A DNA stretch of 33,116 nt from Choristocarpus tenellus KU-1152 (lineage: Eukaryota; Protista; Phaeophyceae), in the NCBI GenBank assembly GCA_964200185.2, contig CAXNAD020000067.1, positions 1 to 33,116 of the forward strand, written 5' to 3'. The notes beneath the pieces were generated by a model. The model was not told where the DNA came from, did no database searches, and worked only from the letters and a program-made list of their open reading frames with translations. A program made the position numbers and the translations under genes. Positions 17,601 through 33,116 of this stretch are shown here, in pieces. Each line of letters opens with the position of its first letter. Positions within the stretch are counted from its first letter, which is position 1.

Positions 17601-20600
17601 TTTGGACAGGCCAAAGACAGAAGAGTTTCCTCCTACTTGTGTGCATCACACAGGCTCTTCTTGGGTACCCTACAACTGGTGTATGGCTTGTGCTAGAGTG
17701 TGACATCTTGTGTATGGCTTGGCAAGTGGTGTCCAGCAAAAAAGCCTCAATGAACACCGTAAACACCAGGATGATGATGATGATGATGATGATGATGGGG
17801 CTATTTTACTGGGGGGAATACAACTCCATTCCAAACAAACTGCCAATGTTCTTGAGGGAGGAGGTCAAACAGGCAGTGCCTGATTGCATGAGAAATACAT
17901 CATAGAGAGGCCAATATGGACTGGTTGGGGACAGCACATTGTCAGACCATCAGAAGATGCCTTAAATGAGAACTTAGATGTACCTGAATTTGAAGCTGAT
18001 GACAAAAGAGGTGCTTTTGAAAGAGCAACTTACACCAGTACATAACTGATATTGCAGTTGGGGGTAGCCTACTTTTAACCAGTGTGGATGAGCTTCCTCA
18101 TTGATCAGCTGGTTGAAGCAGGCCAGGCTCAACTGAACCATCAATTATATATCTTGCTCTCACAAACCAGGTCTTTGTTATCAGAGTCAAACTCAGGTGT
18201 ATTGAAGTTACTAATGAAGTTCTCGTTGCATATTATCCATACAGACAATGGGTTGGAGGAGCCATTTCCATCATGGTGCTTGTGCAAAGGAAAAAACTTG
18301 CTTCACCCACAGTCAGTGCTCATACAATACTCTCATCTACTGCTCTGATGGTAATAAGATTAGTATGTTACTGTTATTATAACTTTAGTGAACTGTGTTA
18401 TGCAATAGCTGTGTTACATAATGGACTTGGGTGTTACAGGGATAGCATAGTACTGCGTATGGTTTGGATAGGATAATTTGGATAGGATACTTTGGATGGG
18501 ATACTTTGGATAGGATACTTGCGGGTGTTACATTACAGGTATAACCTTGCTCATGTACTCTACTGTATTTGCACTGCTGATTTACCTCTTCACATACTGC
18601 ATGATTGGCTTAGCAGCCCTGCTCACGGCCAATTGCTCATCAATTATTTCATCCTCCTCCAATGAACTCAGCTTCAGTGGACCGGTCATATCTACTTCTG
18701 ACTTCACCTGCAAAAGAAGAAGCAGAAGCAGAAGGAGATAGAGATGGATATGGAGAAACAGAATGAGAGAAGAAAAGAGGTAGAAAGGGAGAAGAAAAAG
18801 GTTGAGGAAGTCACTTGAGCTTTCATACAACAAAAACGAATCTTCAACAAGTTCAAGAAGGACACTAAGAACAATAAATAAGACGGCTTCCAAATACAAT
18901 CACCAAAAATAAGATGCATACAGAAAAAGAGGCAATAAAAGACTTTAAGTTAGAACAGTAGTGCTAATTCAATTTAAAGCACAAAAAGGTGCAATAACAA
19001 TGACACAGGCATATACTATATCCTCTTGTTCATACTACTGCAACAAAAACTGAATCTACAAAATATTTCTGTCAGTGAGGCTTAACTTGAGGGGTCAAAC
19101 ATTGGGTCTTTAAAGTCTTGCTTCAACCCTCCATCGCGAAGCTTAGAAACCATCCTCCACAGGATGGCAGTGAATCACTCCAAAGGAACTGGGACACCTT
19201 TGGAACTATATATTATAATGTAGTACATAAAACAAATGACAACCTGTAGTGCCATGGTGACTAAAAATGACACTTCATATATACCTTGAATGACTTAAAA
19301 CAGAACTGTCATACCACACTCAACAAAACACAAAAGCATCCACACTTGCACTATTTGACGCTGTTGGAACTAACCCTAACCCTAACCCTAACCCTAACTA
19401 AGAAAATACCATCACACCATACTGACATGGCGGGAGAAGATGACTACCCAATAGTATGTACAAAGGTACAATGCATTAAAATAGTAGTACACTCAACGTC
19501 AATATAATTTATTGTGGATCCAATTTTTGCGTTGGCCTTACCCAAACTACCAACATGATACACACAATTCCCTATTTTATTATTGAAATATGAAGGGTAT
19601 TTGGGAGGTGAAAGTGAGGAGAATAAAACCTTGTTTTGAACACGCTGGTGAGAGGGTTTTCCATCTCTTAGAACAGACCACACCCGCCAAAAAAATGTCC
19701 CCTAGATAGTTAAAAAGACAAGATAAGAAAATTAGTCTGACAATCGTTGCAAGGCTAACCCTAACCCTAATCTTAGCTGTCATTTGGTGAGGTAAGGGTT
19801 AGGGATTAAAAACGTGTTTCTCCTCCACGATGAGTTGGAGTACACTAGAATTGTTTTTGGCAACTACACAAAACCCTAAATAATGAGTACCTCTCAACCC
19901 AAATGATCATATTACTCTTTGCATTGTATTACACCTTGAGGAGGCATCTGTTTATCAATCCCCAATGAAAAAAACGAAAATTATCCCCACAATTGCTGGC
20001 AGTCCAAATTGACCCTAAAATTCTACTGAGTGTAGTAGTGTACAGTGTTTGGGGGTAGTAGTGTACCGCTATCTAGACACACCAAGAACACAGCCTTAAT
20101 ATTCTCAGGCTCCATACTGACAGTTTCCATGGATCGCATCCTTGATTAGTGCCTTGATTAGTGGGTAAACCCGATGGAAGCAAGTGTTTTAAGGGTTAGG
20201 GTTAGGGTTGTTTTAAGTGCACCGGCCGTAGACAATGCAAATTAATGTTGCACTGAAAAATCTCCAACTCCTCAAGAGCACATACCTCACACAGTTACAC
20301 TCCACAGTATTTTCCACATTAAAGTAATAGGGGTAGGGTCAGTGTTAGCCATTGATTAGAACTCACTCCGCAAGCAAGATCTATTGAGAAAGACCTGCAG
20401 TCTTCTCTTGATGCAGTCTAATGCCTCCAAGTTAACACCAGCATACAGCAGAAAGTTGTACAAACACGTTCAAATTAATACAAAATAAAGTGTGTAAACT
20501 AGGTTTCACTCTGCACACCACAATGAAGGGCACCTCAATGAAGTTATCTGCATCTACTCAACTTGAACAACTGCTGCATAACCCTAACCCTAACCCTAAC

Positions 20601-21849
20601 CTATCCAAGGATACAGCACTACCAGAAAAATACAGAGCAACACCACTTCACATAAACATCTCTAACTCCAACATGAACAAGATGAACACAAAATAATCCA
20701 TTCTATATAACCCTTACAACTACAACACCTGTGCTTACGCATTACTTGCTACATTGCCATGTTAGCCCTAGCCCTAACAAAAATAAAAATTGTTTCTTCT
20801 CCATATAGAGATGGGTGGGAACTATGTATGGGAAATCACAATAATTTTGATGTTTTCTCCCTCATTCATCCTATACTTTATAATACAGTTGCAGATAGTC
20901 ACTAATACATAATATCTACATAATATCATGGTGTGCTTGTTCGTGTGCCTTCCACCCTAACCCTGTATAAAGAGCATAGCAGAGAACAAGTATGCAACGT
21001 GTGCAATTGGTACAAAAACGAAATGGAGTGAACATGACTACGACAAGTCATGCTGTAGATACTCTTTCTAATCATGGTTTTGTACGTAAACATGATATTC
21101 AAACATAACAAGTAAAGGCTAGGGCTAGGGTTAGGGTTAGGGTTAGGGTTGGGGAAAGAGGAAAACAAATGGATTCACCCAAAAGGGTTTTCAAAGGCTT
21201 AAGAAGGTCTAGCTTGGTCCTCTCAACCTAGCTTTGACATTAATCCATAACTGCAACATTGAACACGCACATACTTCAAAGCACGTGTCAGAGAGAGCAA
21301 GTACGTCCATCCATTCCCCCCCACACACACTCTTAGACCCAGAGATTCTGGGGATTGATGGTCGGCAAAGCCCAAGCAACCTTTGGCCTTCACACCAATC
21401 CCCCTCACCTTAACCCACAAGGTTCTACTCACAAGGGCAGAGGAACGGGCGACCGTCATTTGAAGTGAGTGCATCTAGTGATCTCTATCTACTTCTGGCA
21501 GTACGTTTCTCTCACCAAAGCTTCCATCAGCTCCAGCGTGCTTCCGATGGGTTTCGATGAAGGTTCATCCTCTTCACTGGAATCTTCAGGATTACTTCTC
21601 TTGCGTCTGATGTATGTAAGGTCGGGAGGAGGGGGGTGAATCTGAGACACCTGCAACTGGGCGAGAAAACATTCAACTGACCTCAGTGCGAGATTCCTGC
21701 ATCAGAAATGCGACTCATGTTGTAATACATACCACAGGAGTGAGATGCATTTCTTCTATGTTCGCCGGTATCCACTTCCATTGCTGGAGCGCAGCCATTA
21801 TTGAAGGAATGGAACAAAAAATCAATGAATGATATCTCGAGGTAAGCAT
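10170..21849 (-). CDS. 11-exon gene, ~791-aa hypothetical DNA-binding protein: basic/coiled-coil N-half with RWANPEYK (NUMOD3-like) motif, acidic disordered linker, C-terminal AT-hooks
   Basis: Hand-spliced exons (minus strand): 21849-21733 (alternative ATG 21798), 21650-21516, 18707-18586, 16261-16099, 15597-15457, 15229-15155, 14737-14694, 13870-13816, 13364-13339, 13039-12983, 11610-10170. All introns are GT-AG with matching phases; total 2376 nt, no internal stop. Junction reads include ELMEAL|VKSEVD, YVKR|YRVPY, LNPSG|PPTLHN, ETYR|VFTDAEE, KIKFR|FENPQAWMEQK. The 16099/15597, 15155 and 13364 boundaries and the start codon are less certain. Confidence 0.75.
16540..16808 (+). repeat. Highly degenerate purine-rich minisatellite, approx. 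22-25 bp unit (GGGAAGGGATTTGCCCCTATCCAG-like)
   Basis: Recurrent ...AGGG(A)TTG(T)CCCTATC... blocks; unit boundaries imprecise. Confidence 0.6.
17770..17797 (+). repeat. (GAT)9 microsatellite
   Basis: Read directly. Confidence 0.9.
18463..18518 (+). repeat. 14 bp x 4 tandem repeat (TTTGGATAGGATAC)
   Basis: Read directly. Confidence 0.9.
19370..19398 (-). repeat. Interstitial telomeric tract (CCCTAA)4+
   Basis: Read directly; AACTAA at both edges. Confidence 0.93.
20192..20209 (+). repeat. Interstitial telomeric tract (AGGGTT)3 between TGTTTTAAG duplications
   Basis: Read directly. Confidence 0.9.
20580..20603 (-). repeat. Interstitial telomeric tract (CCCTAA)3+
   Basis: Read directly. Confidence 0.9.
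21117..21150 (+). repeat. Interstitial telomeric tract (CTAGGG)2(TTAGGG)3
   Basis: Read directly. Confidence 0.93.
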
Positions 21850-22502
21850 TCTGGCAGCTTCTTAGACGAAATCAAAAATCAGAAGGCTTCTCCAGAAAGG
21901 GAACTAGAGCGAGGGGGAACAAAGCTGTCTTCACCGGAGCGATCGTGTTATTGGTAAAAAGGAGCCAGCTACATAATCAAGTCCCTGCGAAAAAATATAG
22001 CTGGCCTTTCAGACCAAAGGATTGGTTAAATACAATGAAAAATAGACAACTTCAATATGGTGCCAAACTTTGAATTTTAGTGGTATTGGTCACAAGGACC
22101 CACTCTTGTGATGTATACGTGGGGAAAAATGTTCTTATGAGTACAATAAATCGAGGGATTACCTGGCCATGCAGAGGAAGTGCTCACTTCTCCGATCCTT
22201 TCGAATTGGTGTTGACCCTGCCCCACCCATACCTGTCCATCTCCTCCCTAGTAAGATTCCACCCGTTCCCAGTTTCAAGCTCGTCCAGAGATTCTGCCTC
22301 TCATAGACACGGATCAGCGGTTGTATCAATCCATTGCACTGCGCCGCGGCCACGGACAACAACATCACTGAAAGCTTCATCTGTCCAAGTATCGTATGTC
22401 ACAACTCGAACTCATCCCTTCTTCCAATGCTAAACCGCCACTCTTTCTCTACAAAACTATTATTTCGAATTTCGAACCTGGATTCCACAGGATGCAAAAA
22501 GG
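21850..22502. promoter_or_regulatory. Probable bidirectional promoter / 5' UTR region between head-to-head genes
   Basis: About 650 bp between two divergent start codons; visibly richer in CpG than the introns and free of telomeric tracts. No specific motif identified. Confidence 0.5.
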
Positions 22503-22675
22503 ATGGATCATCAAGGTCCAGGACCCCTCCTCACGCGGCACGGTCAGTGCAATGAACGTGGCAATGACCACTACCGCTTGGGACGATTCGAAGAGGCCTG
22601 TGTGCAGTATACTCAGGCCTTGTCAGATGTGCAAGGTGCTACAGCAGAATGCAGGTCCAAGTACTACGCGAACAG
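22503..22675 (+). CDS. Exon 1 of TPR-methyltransferase gene (first TPR; not in the ORF track)
   Basis: ATG at 22503; MDHQGPGPLLTRHGQCNERGNDHYRLGRFEEACVQYTQALSDVQGATAECRSKYYAN(R); donor CAG|GTGAGG. Confidence 0.85.
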
Positions 22676-25600
22676 GTGAGGATTCCTCAATATTTATGAC
22701 GGAATGCGCAGGATTTCCTCCTCACTACCTGGTATTCTCACTCATTGATCAGTAGATGCGATACTGTGGATGTAGTATATGTAGCGTTCTTAAGTTGTTG
22801 TGCAATTCTCCATAAAACTTGAATCTTGCCTGATGAGTAGTGGAGAAGTGTTTGGTATAGCCAACATGCTGCTCGCCTTCGGGTCTACAGGCGTGCCATA
22901 CGTTGATACTGCTGGCGGTAAAGATGAAGACATCTGGATGACCTACTTATTTTGGTCGCCATTTGCAGAAAGTGAAACGTAGCAGTGCTGTCTGGAATGG
23001 ATTGTTCCGTTTAGGATTAGTGAAGTCTCCTGAGATTTGCTGTTGTTGTGGGAAAATTGTTTTTGTTCCTTAATTGCTACCGGTATCGCAGACTGTGTAG
23101 ACTATGAAATTCACACTTGTCTGCAACGTTGTCAATATTTTTACACTTGTCTATTCATTGGCGTTTGAACAAACAAAGACATGCACATTTTCAAGAATCC
23201 AGATCCAGATGCTATTTCTTCCCATACCTTGATGCCTTCATGTCTCCTGACCAACACCTGACGACCTGCATTCAGTGAAAAATTTAACATGTAGGCGCCA
23301 CACAAGTGCCTTCTGCTCATACATACACACATATGCAAGCACAGCCCTAACCCTAGCCTATCACATCTGCTGATTTGTTTTGTAAATTTGTTTTGCAGAG
23401 CCCTGGCACATATACAATTGAGGAGATTCGATGTGAGGACCCCAAAGCTCTTCCAACACTTCCTCCCCAACTTCTGTTCCATATTTACTGGAACAGAACA
23501 AAAACATGCCTCTGCAGTTACTTGCGACAAGCAATACAGCTTCAGCACCAATGGTTGCAGTACCTCCTCAAATATTAGCCCATGGATGAGAGGAAATTGC
23601 CTGAAAGAGTATTTAAAAAACTTCTTTGACAAGCATGACGGTGGCCTATCACTATTGTATTATAGTTACTATCCCTTAGGCAGGTGTGAGTGTCTGCATA
23701 TGTGCTTGTGACAGGTCTAGAAAAGTCTGGCAAGTTTTGGCCAATGTATGAAGTTTGTATGATAGAGTAATGAAACAGCACATAGGGTTAGGGTTTATGT
23801 AGTATTAATACCTTGTTGCAGTACAGTGCATGGTATAACAAAAGATATCCGTATGCCACCAACATTGTGGTTATTGTTACTATCATACCACCCCGTTTAT
23901 TTCTGAAATGATATTTTAAAATGCTGAAATTGACCAGTTATATGTCCACCCACTGCTGCAGGAAGTGGGTTACTGATCTTCTTGTTGATATTTGATTCCC
24001 TTGCCCTAATCCAAGCCTACGCTGTATGTGTACAGGGACAATCTCAAAATGAATTTGTACTTCTACAGCTCTAGTCTCCAACAAAACACTTAAAATTGAT
24101 CCTTGCCCTAACCCCAACACTTTAAATATTATACTCCCAAGTATGACAGTCTGCGATAATAGTAGTAATAGTGTATTGAGAAAGTATTACCACAATCAAA
24201 TCCCTAGTATTGTAACACCAACCTCTATCTCAAAACTAATGTCCCTCGCCATGCCTCACCCTAATTTTGAGGAGCATTAATAAAATGAAGTATGATGTAC
24301 TTAGGGTTAGGGTTAGAATTATTTGTTGTAGTGTCGATACTCAAGTAAGTAGTCGGCAGTACAACAAGGAATTAACCCTGTATATCATATTGAAGTTTGA
24401 CCTGTATTGTGAATAGCTGTATTGTGAACCCTAACACTATTGTAAATAGTTAATCACTTTGAAAACATGAACCATACCAATACCCTTCCAACATCAGCCG
24501 CATAGGAGAGTACTTTGTACTGCATTTGATGTTCTGGGAAGTATGAACCGTGGTGTCAATGCTTGTTCATTAATGTGCTTTGTACACTGTGTGTTCTTTG
24601 AAGTATGTACCACATTACCAGTACTACTACAACAATTTGCTTTGAACTGTGAAATGTAAAACCAATACCACTGCAACAATATACCAATATGCTCAATAGA
24701 CTGCCTTGTACTTTTGCTGCTAGTATGTCCACCAATTACCCCACACAATTCATGGTCTTCTTTTTTCTGAATGCAATCTAGTAACTAATATAACAAATAT
24801 CTTTCTTGAAATCAAGAGTCTATGCTGTACCCTATTGCCATCAATCAATGAGGTCATTCGTACACAATGCAACATCTGTCTAAACAATGTTGAGGATTAA
24901 TACCTACCATGACTTATATCATCAAACAGTACCACTATACTGCTGTCAAGATGCATAAAACGCACTTTATTATGGTCACAACATTTTGCAGCCACAGCTA
25001 CAGAGCCAAATTTGCTGATATTCTGAGCATGAACAGCAACAGTGACCGCATCCTACCTGTAATGGAAATTATTTTTGGCTGCATCAACAAGATGATCACC
25101 ATTACAGTTACATGATCACTGCCATTGAATCTTCCATGCAGGAGTTGTGACTGCCAATTCTTTCACCTCAACTAAGGGGGTTTGTATGTCAACCTGATGA
25201 CTGTATGTCAGTGAACACACTCAATTTTTTTCTTTGTGTGCTTGATTTTCACCCCGATCCAGGAGGCATCAACAGATTGCTCTTTGTCATTGCAGGAGTT
25301 CCCGGCTAATCTGAAGGCATTGATACGGCGAGCCCGTTGTTGGGAGGCTCTGGGGCGCTGGGGTTCAGCGGTGGAGGACTACAGGAAGGCGTTGTCTCAG
25401 GCAATGGTGGCACTTCCAGGTGGTGGCAACAACAGTGGCGGAACTGGATCTTTGAGGAGGACAGCTTCTGACGGCCTGAGCCGTGCAGAAGCGAATGCCA
25501 AGGCTGACATGAAGGTGCAAAGATATTTCTGAACAGTGGCATTACAGATCCGTACCAGGAGAGGGTATCATTCCCCAGGTGTCACTTTGTGTCCAGTACT

Positions 25601-28600
25601 ACCAACAGTAGTGGGGTAACTGTCTAATGATTCTTGTTTTTACTGCCACTATCCCCCCCAATAGACAAAGAGAAGGGTTCTCTATGTTCTTATTTTTTAG
25701 TATTGGTTAGTCGTAGGCATATTTTTGTTTTTTTACAGTTTGTTGGAAGCAGACCAGACCAGTGATGAAGAGTCAAGTGCCATTTCATTTTGGTACTAAG
25801 AAACAACCTTTATCAATTCACGCCTCTCCTATTGATAGCACTTAGACTTTGAGTACTTTTAGTACTTTGAGTCTACCATTTGGAGGGAGAAAAGAAGAAG
25901 TCTATACCTTGACTGGGTGTTCTCAAGTGTGAGGTGTATTAAACAGGGGACTTGTGTTCAAAGAGGTATACTTGATGCGATGCGCTTCTGTCCTTAGTAT
26001 ACTTGATGCAATGTGCTTCTGTCCTTACTATACTTGATGCAATGTGCTTCTGTCCTTACTATACTTGATGCAATGCGCTTCTGTCCTTAGTATACTTGAT
26101 GCAATGTGCTTCTGTCCTTAGTATACTTGATGCGATGTGCTTCTGTCCTTAGTCCTTTGTCTTCCTACTGATCATTCCTGTCTTTGCAGGCTGCCCAGGA
26201 GGAGCCTCCTCCAGCAGAGTTGATCCACCCTAGCCAAATGCTCCGACTGCAGCTCTGGGACCCTCTGCCCTCACAGGTAACTTAGTGCATCTGTGAAGTT
26301 CTAGGAATTAATTGGTATCCCTGCCATGCATGGCTGCTCATGAATGTGCATGCACAAACAGCTGTAGTAGTTGCATATGCTTTGCTTTTTTTCAGGGCAC
26401 ATTCCATGCAATTCTTACAACATACTACTTTTTATCATGCCAATTTTATTGTTTTCCTATTGTTTATATTATTGATATTAACATCACAGAAAAGTTTTCA
26501 CTCTATCCCTTTCTCCATCCCTTGAAGGGAACACCAACCAGAGATGACTGTAGTGCCAACCAGTTGCAGTAGCTTGACAAGTGGTGATACGTTTTTCTTG
26601 TTATTTAAATTTGAAGGGTTAGGGTTAGGGTTAGGGTTAGGGTTAGGGTTAGGGTTAGGGTTAGCAGAGTTTGTACACATTTTATCCTCCCAACCTTCGT
26701 GAGGAATGAAACAAACATGTTCTTTCTGGTAATTTTTTTCCTTGTTGGCTGTTAGGGTTAGGGTTAGGGTTCCAAAAGTCACATTGTGCTTCTTTTTTGG
26801 CATTTTTGTTGTTATGGGTATCGTGTCCATGACCATCACCCACCTACCAGGGATGAAATTAAATAAGTTATTTGGTTTGCAGTTTTGTCCACAGTACACT
26901 TCAACTATCATACCTACATACTGTACATAAATACAAAAGTAATGCAAACATACTTGCAGTCATAGAGACATTTTTCAATGGAGATGGGGATAGGATTGGA
27001 GGTATCTATATGTATATCTTACTGTTGATATTGATTCTTGTATATATGTACTCAGGAGTAGTAGCCAAACATTATGGAGTATGAGTGGTAAGTTCTGTTC
27101 ACACAATTCCTCACCACTGCCACCTCCACAACTCCCAAGAAATCTCTTCGAATCGGCTCTTTATGCAAAAAAACGTTGCATTTGTGTTTTTTTGCAAGTG
27201 TTCATTGGGTGAATGGCTTCCTATTTCAGTTCGCATCTCTAATGAATTTGGTCTATGGAGGAGAGCAGACTTTGGACAGGGGAGTGGTGAGGGAAGAAGA
27301 AGTGATGGCAAAGGGAGTGGGACCAACCAGACAATGGAAGGAGAGTGCAAAAATATAACAGAAGCCAACGAGTTGGAGCAGGTCCAGGAGGAGACACATG
27401 AAAAAGGACCTGAAGCAGATGTGAAGCTGAATGTTAATGTGGAGGCAAGGATATTGCAAGGTATGTTACAATATGAGTTCTGTACTATTGACATTGATAG
27501 TTTGCTATGGATGCTTGCACTATTGTTATTACTATTGTTTAGGTGGGTGGAGGGGGATGGGGTAAGAGAGACTTAGGGTGACTAACCCTAACCCTAAGTA
27601 AGAGAGATTTGAGCACATGTATGGTCAGGTAGCTTTTTACATTTGCTGGGTGCACAAACAGGAGCGGTTATATATATTGGTTAGGGTTAGGGTTAGGGTT
27701 AGGTTTAGGGTTAGGTTTAGGGTTAGGTTTAGGGTTACCATTACAGAGCTGCTCTCAACCTTTTACCTCTCTCATCTTGTCCATCTGTATCAGACCACAA
27801 ATATTGATGTATTGTGACATGAATATTGTATCAAAAGTGCTGAAAAAGAAATATAGGGACATTGGTATCAGAAGAATCAATTTTATGTGACATCAACCTT
27901 GGACAATTGATTTTTCACAATTCTCCAGAGGCAGCCACCGTCAATGAATCCAACTTTGACTTAGGGTTAGGGTTAGGAATACAGTTCATGCCTAAGCTAC
28001 CCAACCTGACCCCACTAACCTAAGAATCAGCCCTGCTTAACCTGAGACCTCTCATGGTCCTTTCAAACTGTATCTTTTCCAGCCCGATCCTTTCAAACCT
28101 GAGAACCAACTAGGCTTGAACTGAGATCTGGTTTGGTCCTTTGAAAAATATGTTTTTACTGAGCCAGCCAATAGCCTAGCTCTGTTAAAGGTGCTAAAGA
28201 CCCTGGTCCAGCAAGATAGGGTTAGGGTTTAGTATGGGGCACAGTATGACCACTTCCAATAGTCTGTTGATGTTCTGTACAATGGGAATCGCGTTAGAGG
28301 TAGAAATCATAGTGTTAGGGATTTAGGGTTAGGGGTAACCCTTATCCTGGACACGATAGCATCATACCGCTATGCCCACCAACAGTTTTTTTTCCAGCAC
28401 ATAAATCAGGGATTGTTTTTGTTAAGTCAGGGATTGATATTGTTATGTCAGGGATTGTTATTGTTATGTCAGGGATTGTTATTGTTATGTCAGGGATTGT
28501 TATTGTTATGTCAGGGATTGTTATTGTTAAATCAGGGATTGTTATTGTTGGTGTGTGTCCTGGTTGTAGTAATCCATACATACATATCACTCATCTGATG

Positions 28601-31600
28601 TCTTGTGTTAATAGACCAAACCCTAACCCTAATCCATTACACGTAGCACATCACTGACAATGAAATCAGCAAGTCCAAAGGTGATACAAAGATGCCTCAA
28701 CCTGTTCAACTAGAAGTTTGGTAGTAGGAAAGAAGGATGGCTCTATCAACAACGCCCAAGACAACATCCAACTCCAACTCTACCTCCCCTGCCACCACCA
28801 CTATGCCTACAACAGAAAAATTAAAAGTTGTGAAGAACCAGGAAGCCTGCCAAGGAAGAGCGGACCTGTACTACAATCCCTCCCTGCTCAGAGTTGAGAC
28901 TGACCCTGAAAATGTCTCCATTGGAAGGGAGGGCAAGGCATCCTTCCTTGTTCGTTTCACCCTAACACAACAACAGCAGTGTGCTAGTAGTGGTCCTGGT
29001 GGCAATGACATGGTCTCCAGGGCAGCTGTGTTGGATGGTGGTAGCCACAGCGGTTGCAGTGTTGGGGAAGAAGTGACTGTGCAGATGAAGGAGTCTGGGG
29101 TTATTGGAATCCGACAGCTGGGATTCACAAGGCGTAGTGTATGTGATGGTGGACTAGGGGTTGATAGTGAGAGGGATGGCATTAATGTTCCAGAAGAGGA
29201 CAGTGACTGTGATGGTGATGGCGGCAAGGGTTTGGTAGTGGCGCAGGCGTTGCTGAGGTTGTTTATCGGGAAGGAGAATGCAAAGAATGTGTTGGGTAGA
29301 GAGGTGAGTTTTGATTATAGTTTGGGTGATGGTTTGGGAAGGGTGGGGGGGTGATGTTGAGGTGAGGTATGTTTTTATTTTTTTGTACAGGCTAGGATGT
29401 TCTTGTTGCAATAATAGACTCTGATGAGGCTTTGTATTTCACATTATGTCTATGTTAGTGCTATGGGGTATTGTTCTGATGCTATTGGGTGTACTATTTG
29501 TATATATACCTTCCAAGTCTTGGGGCATTATAGCTAAACACCTATATTTTGTGCTCTACTCTAGTATTATTGTATTGGTGACAATGATTATCTTTTGTGT
29601 TATTAATTATTTCTTTTTGGTGAGGATGAATGACATTAACTCCAAGGTTTAGGGTTAGGGTGAGGATTAGAATCAAAGCATGATTGCAATATTTGTATTT
29701 GAAGTGAAACATTGACCTCCACTTTGAAATTGCGCAATGGCATGTGGTGTGCATACACATTAGAGTGTGTCCAATCAAATCAAACTGTTCCATGCTGATC
29801 CGAGCTTTGGTTGAATCATAGCGATCGTTTTATTGCTGAAATTCCCACAATATATTTTTGTGTTTTTTGGTTGAATTTTTGTGGAATGAGACTCTTTTTG
29901 AAAATCATTGTATGCTTGTGAGCACAGAGGAAATTAATACATCCCAACCCTAATTAATACATCCTACCTTATCCCTAACCCCAATTTTCATAACATGTAC
30001 TTTTTTTTCTTTTCTCATTTCTGAAATAAAGAAATTAATTTTGTTATTCTGTTATCTGTGTTGTGAAATAACAATACAAATATGTTTCTCCTTTCTGTGA
30101 GGCCTTTAATGGACTGTTGATACTACAACATAAACACATACAGCAAAGACAGTCCTACAGACCGTTCTATTCAATTTCATGACAGGAAACAGTTGGTGCA
30201 ACTGTAGTGATTGACTGTTTATAACACTATGGAGGCGTTCTACAAGCAAGGGAAGAGTCCCAGGAGTCGATACCATACTATTCACCCTGCACGGTCTCTG
30301 ATTCCATCAGTAGAGGTAGTGTAATTGAAGGAATGGATAGTGTAACCGCCCTACCTGCTGTCCTAACCCTAACCCTAAGTATTATTAACACAACCTCTCA
30401 AATCATGCTTGAGGAAAGACTATTCCCAGCAAATTCAAAAGTCAGATTTCTTTGTTTTTAGGGCTAGGGTTAGGTATAATATGTGGAATGGAAAATGGTT
30501 AGGGTTAGGGTTAGGGTTAGGTTTGCTATGTACCTTCTCTCCAGAAACAGCAATATTTGGTGTTGTACATGAGACTCATGCAACGATAAGGTGACTGCGA
30601 AAACATGGATAATACTCTGCTCACAAGAAAAGTTATCCTTGTTCAATTTAGCCCTTGCTATATTCATTCCACTGAATTATAATACAAGAGGCTAAATTTA
30701 GCAATCCTGGATTTGCATTGTTTGCGTGTCCAACTCTGTAGAATTGATATTGATATTGATATTGATAACAACTATGCTACGTTACTTCTGTTCCTACACT
30801 AACAAATGGTGTCACTGGTACAGGTGAGTACTACAGTATTGTAGCCCTAACCCTAACCATAAGGCAGGTGAGTAGGACGGAAAAACATGCTGTACTGTAG
30901 GGGCTTAATTACTACTATTTTTATTTTATTCTCTGCTACTTGGAAATATTATGCTTCATACAATTCTAAAATGCTCAGTATTTTTTTTGTATATTTTTCC
31001 CTTGTCCATGCATCTATTGGGTTATGAGTCAGGTGGTGCCCGTCCTGTCTCTTCCCATCTCCATCCTAGCTGGCTCTTGTTCTTCTTCCAAGTGCCCAGG
31101 GTTAGGGTTAGGGTTAGGGTTAGGGTTAGACTCCAAGTCTGCTGATGGAATGGTCATTAACCCCTCCTTGCAGCTGTCACTGAATGAGGATATAGCTAAT
31201 GGCATTCACTGCTGCCGGGAGATCTTTCTCAAGCCCCTAGACATGCACATTCTTATTGCAGAGTCCCCTGGGCAACTTGGTGAGAACAGAGGACATAGGA
31301 TGGACTATGCAAGATATCTAACCCTAACCCTAACTCCAAACGATGTGAAAATGCATGTTTAAAATCTCACTATTTGATTCTCCCCCTTGAGACACAGTCT
31401 AATCCTAACCCTTGATACACAGTCTTGGCAGGAAAAAGAAAATGCAATGATTGTTGAATGATACAATTTGATTTGAATTATTCCAAATCAAAAGGGTTAG
31501 TCTACAATGGATTATAATTGATTCAGACTTATGGTTGGTCAGTTGAGTTTGAATTTCCAAAGACTAACAGAAGATTCTTTAAGCACTGTGGTTAGCTTGA

Positions 31601-33116
31601 GGAAATTGTGATATGATGGACAAATGAGAAGGGCAACTACTCGGTTATTATTATCTTTTATTATTATCTTTTATTATTATCTTTCTGATTTGGCAAAATG
31701 TCCATTTTGTTTTAATTAAGCTATTTTCCTGTGAAGACTTTGTTTTACAATTTTATTTGTGTGATAATAATACCTCCTTAGGGTTAGGGTTAGCATAGAA
31801 ATTATGAGAAAATGTTTATGACCCATAGCCTACATTCAAAGAGTCACGCCATGCCAAGGTGTTACTGAAAGATAAGAAAGAAAAGTATACACTTGAACAA
31901 GACTAAGGATTCTACTGAAAAAAATAATATAGTGCGATACAATTGCCAGCATCTGTCAATCAAGTAATTTTTTTATCTTATCAAGTCTCCTAACCCTAAC
32001 CCTAACCCAAGTATTGTACCCCTGCTTTTATTTCAAGTAATCATGATTAAAAACAGTTGGAGTATTATCTTCTTATTTTTATCTTTTGTGTTTCCAAGAG
32101 GAACCATTCTCATACCTCATTTGCAACAGTTCCCCCATGATGTAGAAAGAGCTAAAAAATCTAATCAAATGAATGAACTGGAAAATATATTTTATTGCAG
32201 GACATAAGTTCTTCCAGTTCAGTTGGTGGTCTTAGGGTTAGGGTTAGGGTTAGGGTTAGTTGGTGGTCTTAGGTATGAACCCGCAGTACCTGCTACACAT
32301 CCTCACTACAACCCATATCACCACAGCGACACTCAATGTGCCAGTTGTTTGTCAGCTCTTAACTCCCTCATTGACCCAGAATTTTTTTCAAGGGTAGTTA
32401 CACATTATCTTTGGAACCCTAACCCTAACCCTAACCCTTTTCTGACTGATTTAGAGCCGTTCTAATTGCTGTGATAATTTGGTGGATGTGTATTGTATCA
32501 ACTATCTCCAGGAGTTTTATGATATATATGTAAGTCAGTTTATTGACAGTAGATTGTGTTGTGTGGACTGTACTCACCTCTTCATTGTACTCACCTCTTC
32601 ATTGTACTCACATCTTCGTTGTACTCACATCTTCATCGTACCTTTTTTTCCCCCAGTGCTGCAGAGTATACTGTGTTTGGACTTAATATATCAGAATAAC
32701 CCTAACTCTAATTCTAATCTCTGTACCTTTATTGTGTCTCAATACACACAATATCTTTGCCATACCTTTATTGATTGTGTTGCAAACTATAGTACAAGTG
32801 TGATTTTCTATTTGAGTCAGCCTACTAAGTATATAATTTATATAATTGTTCCCTAACCCTAAGAGTCATCCACAAGCCTTTATTCTCAAGCCAAAGTCTA
32901 TGTCATACCACCAGTCCTAACCCTCAACCTGTGCAATAACTCATAATGTATCACAACGTACAAAACTTGATAGTGTTAGAGCGGCATCCTCCATCCCTAA
33001 CCCTGACTTACTCTTTATATTGGTACACATAAGTTGATAAATTTTACTATACACATGATAGGTATTGGTGGGAAGGTATGGGATGCAGCATTTGTACTCT
33101 TTGACTACCTCTTGGG
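22503..33116 (+). CDS. Multi-exon gene (3'-partial): N-terminal TPR repeats fused to a METTL21/VCPKMT/EEF2KMT-like (Methyltransf_16) SAM-dependent protein-lysine methyltransferase
   Basis: Exons 22503-22675, 23399-23432, 25263-25514, 26190-26276, 27199-27460, 28816-29303, 31033-31279, 33062->33116; GT-AG, phases consistent. TPR text: NERGNDHYRLGRFEEACVQYTQAL...YYANR|ALAHIQLRRFD|EASTDCSLSLQEFPANLKALIRRARCWEALGRWGSAVEDYRKAL. The last junction gives ILIAESPGQL|GIGGKVWDAAFVLFDYL, the G-x-x-VWDAA-x-x-L start of family-16 methyltransferases. The 28816 acceptor is the least certain. Confidence 0.85.
25263..25514 (+). CDS. Exon 3 of TPR-methyltransferase gene (TPR 2-3)
   Basis: KALIRRARCWEALGRWGSAVEDYRKAL matches the TPR consensus; CAG| acceptor and AAG|GTGCAA donor; 84 codons. 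Confidence 0.85.
25967..26152 (+). repeat. Minisatellite, 31 bp x 6 (TATACTTGATGCRATGYGCTTCTGTCCTTAS)
   Basis: Six contiguous units read directly; only three variable positions. Confidence 0.97.
26615..26664 (+). repeat. Interstitial telomeric tract (TTAGGG)~8, the longest perfect tract in the window
   Basis: Read directly; intron 4 of the TPR-methyltransferase gene. Confidence 0.97.
26751..26771 (+). repeat. Interstitial telomeric tract (TTAGGG)3+
   Basis: Read directly. Confidence 0.9.
27679..27737 (+). repeat. Interstitial telomeric tract with alternating TTAGGG/TTAGGT variant units
   Basis: Read directly. Confidence 0.95.
28406..28549 (+). repeat. Minisatellite, 21 bp x ~7 (TCAGGGATTGTTATTGTTATG)
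   Basis: Read directly; intronic; explains three spurious repetitive ORFs. Confidence 0.95.
30497..30521 (+). repeat. Interstitial telomeric tract (GGTTAG)4
   Basis: Read directly. Confidence 0.9.
31033..31279 (+). CDS. Exon 7 of TPR-methyltransferase gene, containing an in-frame (GGGTTA)5
   Basis: Acceptor TCAG|GTG at 31032, donor TTG|GTGAGA at 31279. VVPVLSLPISILAGSCSSSKCP-GLGLGLGLGL-DSKSADG...GIHCCREIFLKPLDMHILIAESPGQL; the phase fits both neighbouring exons. Confidence 0.8.
31099..31128 (+). repeat. Exonic telomeric tract (GGGTTA)5 encoding (Gly-Leu)5
   Basis: Read directly; in frame with the predicted exon 31033-31279. Confidence 0.93.
31645..31683 (+). repeat. 13 bp x 3 tandem repeat (TTATTATTATCTT)
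   Basis: Read directly. Confidence 0.9.
31989..32008 (-). repeat. Interstitial telomeric tract (CCTAAC)3+
   Basis: Read directly. Confidence 0.9.
32232..32259 (+). repeat. Interstitial telomeric tract (TTAGGG)4+ between 16-bp duplications
   Basis: Read directly. Confidence 0.95.
32415..32438 (-). repeat. Interstitial telomeric tract (AACCCT)4
   Basis: Read directly. Confidence 0.93.
32569..32636 (+). repeat. 17 bp x 4 tandem repeat (TGTACTCACMTCTTCRT)
   Basis: Read directly. Confidence 0.9.
33062..33116 (+). CDS. Exon 8 (truncated by window end): start of the Methyltransf_16 domain
   Basis: ATAG|GT ATT GGT GGG AAG GTA TGG GAT GCA GCA TTT GTA CTC TTT GAC TAC CTC = (G)IGGKVWDAAFVLFDYLL. 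Confidence 0.85.

Follow-up and report, generated by a model that had tools for sequence, protein, structure and literature searches.

A telomeric repeat insertion with a 16-bp target-site duplication in an intron of the brown alga Choristocarpus tenellus, a probable scar of telomerase-extended break repair

The 33,116-nt stretch of DNA analysed here (the window), which is the whole of contig G000:C67 of Choristocarpus tenellus, carries at positions 32221-32273 a perfect run of telomeric repeats held between two identical copies of a 16-bp sequence. This raises the question of how the repeats came to lie there: whether they were inserted at a broken target that was duplicated in the process, and which activity supplied them.

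Structure and genomic setting of the insert

The initial annotation of this DNA had described a perfect 16-bp duplication around a telomeric insert, and examination of both copies confirmed this with exact coordinates: the 16-mer, AGTTGGTGGTCTTAGG, is identical at 32221-32236 and 32258-32273, and 21 telomeric bases separate the two copies. Because the bases just beyond the copies differ on both sides (C/T on the left, G/T on the right), the direct repeat is exactly 16 bp long. The features of the locus are as follows, where C13310 is a contig from a related copy of the region that is described below.

31031..31279, + strand: nearest expressed exon upstream of the insert (spliced contig of run X3, coverage to 31278)
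32221..32236, + strand: left copy of the 16-bp target-site duplication (from the sequence; single copy in contig C13310)
32232..32259, + strand: maximal perfect (TTAGGG)4.7 tract, 28 bp, zero substitutions
32237..32257, G-strand on + (sense relative to the host gene): added telomeric repeat, 21 nt, absent from C13310
32258..32273, + strand: right copy of the 16-bp target-site duplication (from the sequence)

The perfect tract begins inside the left copy, of which it takes in 5 nt (TTAGG), and extends 2 nt (AG) into the right copy. The last five bases of the left copy are in register with the tract, as had also been noted at the outset, and the same in-register TTAGG end recurs at a second locus, C37:9513. 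The first two bases of the right copy continue the register, and the edges of the 21-nt insert can slide by the bases that tract and copies have in common. Searching the whole 164-Mb assembly for the exact 16-mer returned two occurrences, both at the insert site; the probability that any one tract is abutted by such a perfect repeat by chance is roughly 1e-8. The flanks of the insert are unique in the assembly except for their match to C13310. The 21 nt between the copies are pure repeat, with no element body or poly(A), and so do not qualify as an inserted DNA transposon, LINE or SINE.

Run X3 behaves like RNA, and one of its contigs is spliced, joining 27458 to 28814 and 29301 to 31031 with GT..AG boundaries on the + strand. 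The exon at 31031-31279 is closed by a splice donor rated good (exonic G followed by GTGAGA, at 31279/31280), and RNA-like depth is ~0.8 at the insert compared with ~155 in exons. The insert is therefore intronic: it lies ~0.95 kb inside an intron, in a gene that is expressed from the + strand, and its G-strand coincides with the sense strand. A reading of the site as coding exon was rejected on the basis of these depths and of paralog identity, which is equal in introns and exons. Pfam analysis of the neighbouring ORFs gave a weak TPR match and nothing else. A separate telomeric tract of 32 bp (31098-31129) lies inside the expressed exon 31031-31279 itself, with RNA-like X3 contigs on either side.

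TTAGGG arrays of at least 72 bp are found as CCCTAA at contig starts and as TTAGGG near probable contig 3' ends (judged from contig rank). This placement at contig ends in telomere orientation identifies TTAGGG as the true telomere repeat, and the insert, being perfect TTAGGG with the same unit as the arrays, is made of the telomeric repeat that the organism itself uses. Contig C1404 carries a TERT-like sequence, with a Telomerase_RBD match of 33.7 bits, above the Pfam cut-off. Four consecutive TTAGGG units occur 2344 times genome-wide versus 2 for the reversed control, and the window holds 31 perfect tracts of at least 12 bp, on both strands and all beyond 16.3 kb (within about 17 kb). Tract density is uneven: tracts are absent up to 13.7 kb of the window, imperfect ones start at that point, and the density from there on is ~1 per kb. 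Genome-wide, ~1200 tracts of at least 18 bp per start register correspond to roughly one per 20-25 kb, and tract matches are concentrated on certain contigs, such as C37, C73, C74, C172 and C197.

An empty site in a second copy of the region

Searching the assembly revealed a collinear second copy of the region, in which C3872 matches window positions 20319-29326 and C13310 matches 31450-33116. Identity is ~82% overall and 85-90% where the copies are well aligned, with introns as similar as exons. The second copy represents either a segmentally duplicated stretch, and thus a paralog, or a highly divergent haplotype; it is not an ortholog. At C13310:4008-4035, the left flank, one 16-mer and the right flank follow one another with zero telomeric units and zero second copies; this 16-mer differs from that of the window at one position (A instead of T). 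The window copy is longer by exactly 37 bp, corresponding to the 21 bp of repeat and 16 bp of duplicated target. A single 16-mer without a tract in C13310 therefore means that the structure in the window is a 37-bp insertion of repeats plus target-site duplication, where the empty-site evidence consists of one related copy, without an outgroup. The initial annotation had proposed searching for an allele or ortholog in which the 16-mer is single and the tract missing, and C13310 has this arrangement between the same flanks, in the form of a paralog or divergent haplotype. A 16-mer match on C123 was considered as an outgroup for the polarity of the T in TTAGG and was rejected: it carries the same A variant as C13310, and its flanks are unshared (at least 4 mismatches in 12 nt).

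Public reads were consulted as Logan contigs of three runs from one study, and these contigs break in repeats. An independent contig passes from unique sequence into the left copy and beyond, ending at 32221 plus 34 further letters. The Logan contigs neither contradict the junction nor span it fully; no join skipping the 37 bp was present among those listed, an absence that breakage in repeats leaves uninformative.

Most other tracts are common to both copies of the region and partly decayed in one of them, and so are older than the region duplication. Two tracts, 32232-32259 and 32415-32438, are specific to the window copy. The insertion at 32232-32259 is apparently younger than the region duplication and comparatively recent, because the tract is perfect and the 16-mers are identical while the copies of the region diverge by 12-18%.

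Further differences between the copies were observed nearby. The tract at 32415-32438, absent from C13310, is part of a 31-bp insertion of C-strand repeats with a 4-nt filler (CCAA, in G-strand orientation), at best a degenerate 6-bp duplication, and one in-register base at the G-strand 5' junction. A segment of ~108 bp at 32009-32115 is also absent from C13310 and starts exactly at the edge of an older shared tract (31989-32008); it was either inserted at a tract junction or deleted from the other copy, and has no further match in the assembly. Shared tracts can be of unequal length, as at 26615-26664 (50 bp versus 14 bp) and 21126-21150.

Flanking duplications and junction register at other tracts

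The frequency of such duplications was assessed in a 179-kb sample (the window plus loci L001-L094) that is biased to tract-rich places and contains 218 perfect tracts. A duplication was counted where an exact direct repeat with a non-telomeric core of at least 7 bp abutted the tract. This identified abutting duplications of 8-16 bp at 6/218 tracts, every one at a tract of at least 18 bp: 0/125 for tracts of 12-17 bp, 2/44 for tracts of 18-23 bp and 4/49 for tracts of 24 bp or more. The duplications are:

C67:32232: 16 bp
C37:9513: 15 bp, also ending TTAGG in register
C5:14998: 11 bp
C74:26267: 11 bp
C73:1068: 9-bp non-telomeric core within a higher-order repeat of core plus telomeric sequence; ambiguous
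C4:14163: 8 bp

A 9-bp duplication at C67:20192 has a non-telomeric core of 6 and falls just under the threshold; it is counted among the eight junction events discussed below.

A naive control of ordinary microsatellites was dropped, since many of these sit in minisatellites or compound repeats where flanking repeats are trivial, and was replaced by flank permutation and by random placement with an array filter. Flank permutation gave a null of 0.046%. When segments of the same length were placed at random, 0.75% had flanking repeats, almost all in minisatellites, and this null fell to 0.12-0.14% after array-like matches were removed. Following a strict array filter, 3/93 tracts of at least 18 bp keep their duplication, compared with a null of 0.14% (p=3e-4). 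The ordinary microsatellite controls yielded 3/256 isolated cases, two of them compound repeats, and the contrast with telomeric tracts was not significant on the 179-kb sample. The earlier expectation that flanking repeats of at least 8 bp would be commoner at telomeric tracts than at microsatellites thus held as an excess over the null, confined to a minority of tracts, whereas the contrast with microsatellites themselves was weak. Duplication-flanked inserts are a real but minor class, and 45/49 long tracts are without a duplication.

The variation in duplication length from 8 to 16 bp excludes a fixed-stagger transposase: the lengths of 8, 9, 11, 11, 15 and 16 bp show no family-typical fixed value, and among transposition mechanisms this variability fits LINE-type priming only.

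Two of the loci listed above have additional structure. At L085/L086 (G000:C73:1068-1097), the 9-bp core ACAAATTGG lies between telomeric stretches, with telomere-like sequence past the right copy, and at L092-L094 (G000:C74:26267-26295) a degenerate TTATGGTT follows the 11-bp copy. These arrangements suggest either that old, decayed tracts underwent repeated events or that tract and flank were tandemly duplicated together.

Junctions were compared across eight insertions with a reconstructable target, comprising six duplications and the empty sites at 32415 and C3:7850. The numbers of in-register bases per event are:

G-strand 5' junction: 5, 5, 2, 2, 1, 1, 0, 0
Other junction: 2, 1, 1, 0, 0, 0, 0, 0

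Across these eight events, the G-strand 5' junction has at least one in-register base in 6/8 (25% expected) and at least two in 4/8 (6% expected). The asymmetry between the two junctions is as predicted if a 3' end is extended along a C-rich template. It speaks against both the symmetric capture of duplex fragments and the reverse transcription of G-rich telomeric transcripts. Tract 3' ends show a mild excess of ...GGGTT and ...TTAG (p=0.04) that is too weak for use.

The event at C3:7850 (L035-L040, G000:C3:7850-7865) is a telomeric insert of 16 bp that lies in a hairpin loop, carries 3 nt of filler and has 2 bases in register. The hairpin is conserved in a dispersed repeat family (stem CCTACTCC/GGAGTAGG), and the copies on C3872, C43, C48, C981, C1183 and C24995 are empty.

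Origin of the inserted repeats

Both the insert and its duplication are probably explained by a staggered break that was extended by telomerase and repaired by end joining. In this scheme, a germ-line break in the intron would have arisen from opposite-strand nicks 16 bp apart, such that both ends retained the same 16 bp. The 3' terminus, ...TCTTAGG, would have paired with the telomerase RNA template, and telomerase would have added about 3.5 TTAGGG repeats. After this extension, the 3' end (...TTAG) could have annealed to the opposite end through 0-2 nt (AG), and gap filling and ligation by end joining would have generated the present order of target copy, 21 nt of repeat and target copy. Telomerase as the polymerase, the order of these steps and the polarity of the overhangs are presumed. 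A staggered break with 3' overhangs, whose TTAGG end was extended, filled in and religated, had already been proposed in the initial annotation. The empty site, the in-register TTAGG and the recurrence of the class support this proposal, except in the matter of 3' overhangs, which are not separable from filled-in 5' overhangs that would give an identical product.

At the same staggered break, the repeats could have come from a source other than telomerase, either as a telomeric fragment captured during end joining or through polymerase-theta-type copying of a nearby tract. Potential templates are close by, with one tract per 200-400 bp here, short microhomology is present at both junctions of the insert (5 and 2 nt), and other new inserts have the 3-4 nt filler typical of error-prone end joining. 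However, the insert is pure repeat without any non-telomeric passenger sequence, the skew of microhomology towards the G-strand 5' junction is unexpected for capture of a duplex fragment, and thousands of tracts would still require a telomere-specific primary source, so we consider capture or copying unlikely. A different source of the repeats would be LINE-type target-primed reverse transcription of telomeric-repeat RNA at a nick, where a staggered second nick produces a variable duplication. The absence of poly(A), element body and 3' UTR remnant, together with six targets that have no visible common nick-site motif, makes this very improbable, even though the range of duplication lengths resembles that of LINE insertions and microhomology priming is also known of LINEs. 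Furthermore, the strand primed here is the G-strand, which needs a C-rich template (telomerase RNA) and not the usual UUAGGG transcript.

The least probable of the explanations weighed is that no insertion took place, and that the locus reflects tandem duplication or slippage of a pre-existing tract and its flank, a deletion in the related copy or an assembly error. C13310 has neither tract nor proto-repeat and joins the left flank of copy 1 straight to the right flank of copy 2, while a precise deletion between the 16-mers in C13310 would require that the same structure had been there originally. Upstream of copy 1 the sequence is non-telomeric, hence there is no extended array, and the independent contig spans unique sequence into copy 1 and past it. 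These points stand against the observations that the region is formally 1.4 copies of a 37-bp unit, that the genome is rich in minisatellites, as reflected in the unfiltered random-placement figure, and that short-read contigs break within repeats. Expansion of a microsatellite or minisatellite was rejected separately: the sequence outside the 16-mers does not match, and C13310 is without a TTAGGG unit at the site.

Telomerase-extended repair of a staggered break, the preferred reading, can be compared with telomeric insertions in mammals, for which Nergadze et al. (2007; PMC2246262, Tables 1 and 4) distinguished classes with no change, deletion, addition or duplication. The duplication class makes up 4.6% of the loci in rodents and 16% in primates, and at least one in-register base is present at 75-77% of loci (Nergadze et al. 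2007; PMC2246262). In horse, the duplication class comprises 4.5% of loci, and 5% of loci have at least five in-register bases (Santagostino et al. 2020; PMC7215372, Fig. 3d, Tables 5 and 6). The authors of these mammalian studies attributed direct target duplication to a staggered break (PMC2246262, PMC7215372). The algal insert is like the mammalian duplication class in that a few perfect TTAGGG units were inserted in one step, an empty related locus exists and the target is duplicated. Frequencies are also similar, with the class at ~3-8% in the C. tenellus sample versus 4.5-16% in mammals, and with the 6/8 junctions carrying at least one in-register base close to the mammalian proportion. 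In contrast, the algal insert has a stramenopile host (a brown alga), tracts are locally far denser (~1 per kb in the host gene), the empty site was provided by a paralogous or divergent copy instead of an ortholog, and no co-insert derived from telomerase RNA was found.

The locus thus has the tested features of the mammalian duplication class, namely the organism's own telomeric repeat, an empty related site, an abutting duplication and an in-register junction; the role of telomerase we infer. This type of break-repair scar is already known from mammals (rodents, primates and horse), and what is new is the stramenopile lineage; a literature search found nothing on such telomeric tracts in brown algae or Choristocarpus. 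By itself, the single locus is a textbook example and introduces no new mechanism. Its significance is that the mammalian telomerase-at-break scar would also form in a stramenopile, with the same sub-classes and proportions, which supports break repair as a side activity of telomerase that is both old and general. For the short telomeric tracts that are unusually dense in some C. tenellus genes, the insert also provides a mechanistic anchor.

In chromosome healing, telomerase uses as its primer a non-telomeric 3' end that matches its template over 1-5 nt. The priming proposed for the algal insert is of the same kind, but the extended end would have rejoined the other fragment, giving an internal tract and no new chromosome end. 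In target-primed reverse transcription by LINEs, the 3' OH of a break primes RNA copying, and a second staggered break leads to a variable target-site duplication. The algal locus differs from this in having no element sequence, poly(A) or recognisable endonuclease site, and its template would be telomerase RNA.

A more far-reaching possibility, which we regard as improbable, is that telomerase acts as a routine and very frequent repair polymerase at breaks or nicks in particular genes of C. tenellus, priming in a retrotransposon-like manner at staggered nicks, and that an excess of C before tracts reports the base adjoining its RNA template. C is overrepresented just before tracts that start exactly with TTAGGG, at 460/1237 tracts of at least 18 bp genome-wide (37% versus ~25% expected) and at 45/87 in the 179-kb sample, with window examples at 32231, 31777 and 27960. 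The excess is absent in the other five start registers and may reflect the base that adjoins the telomerase RNA template.
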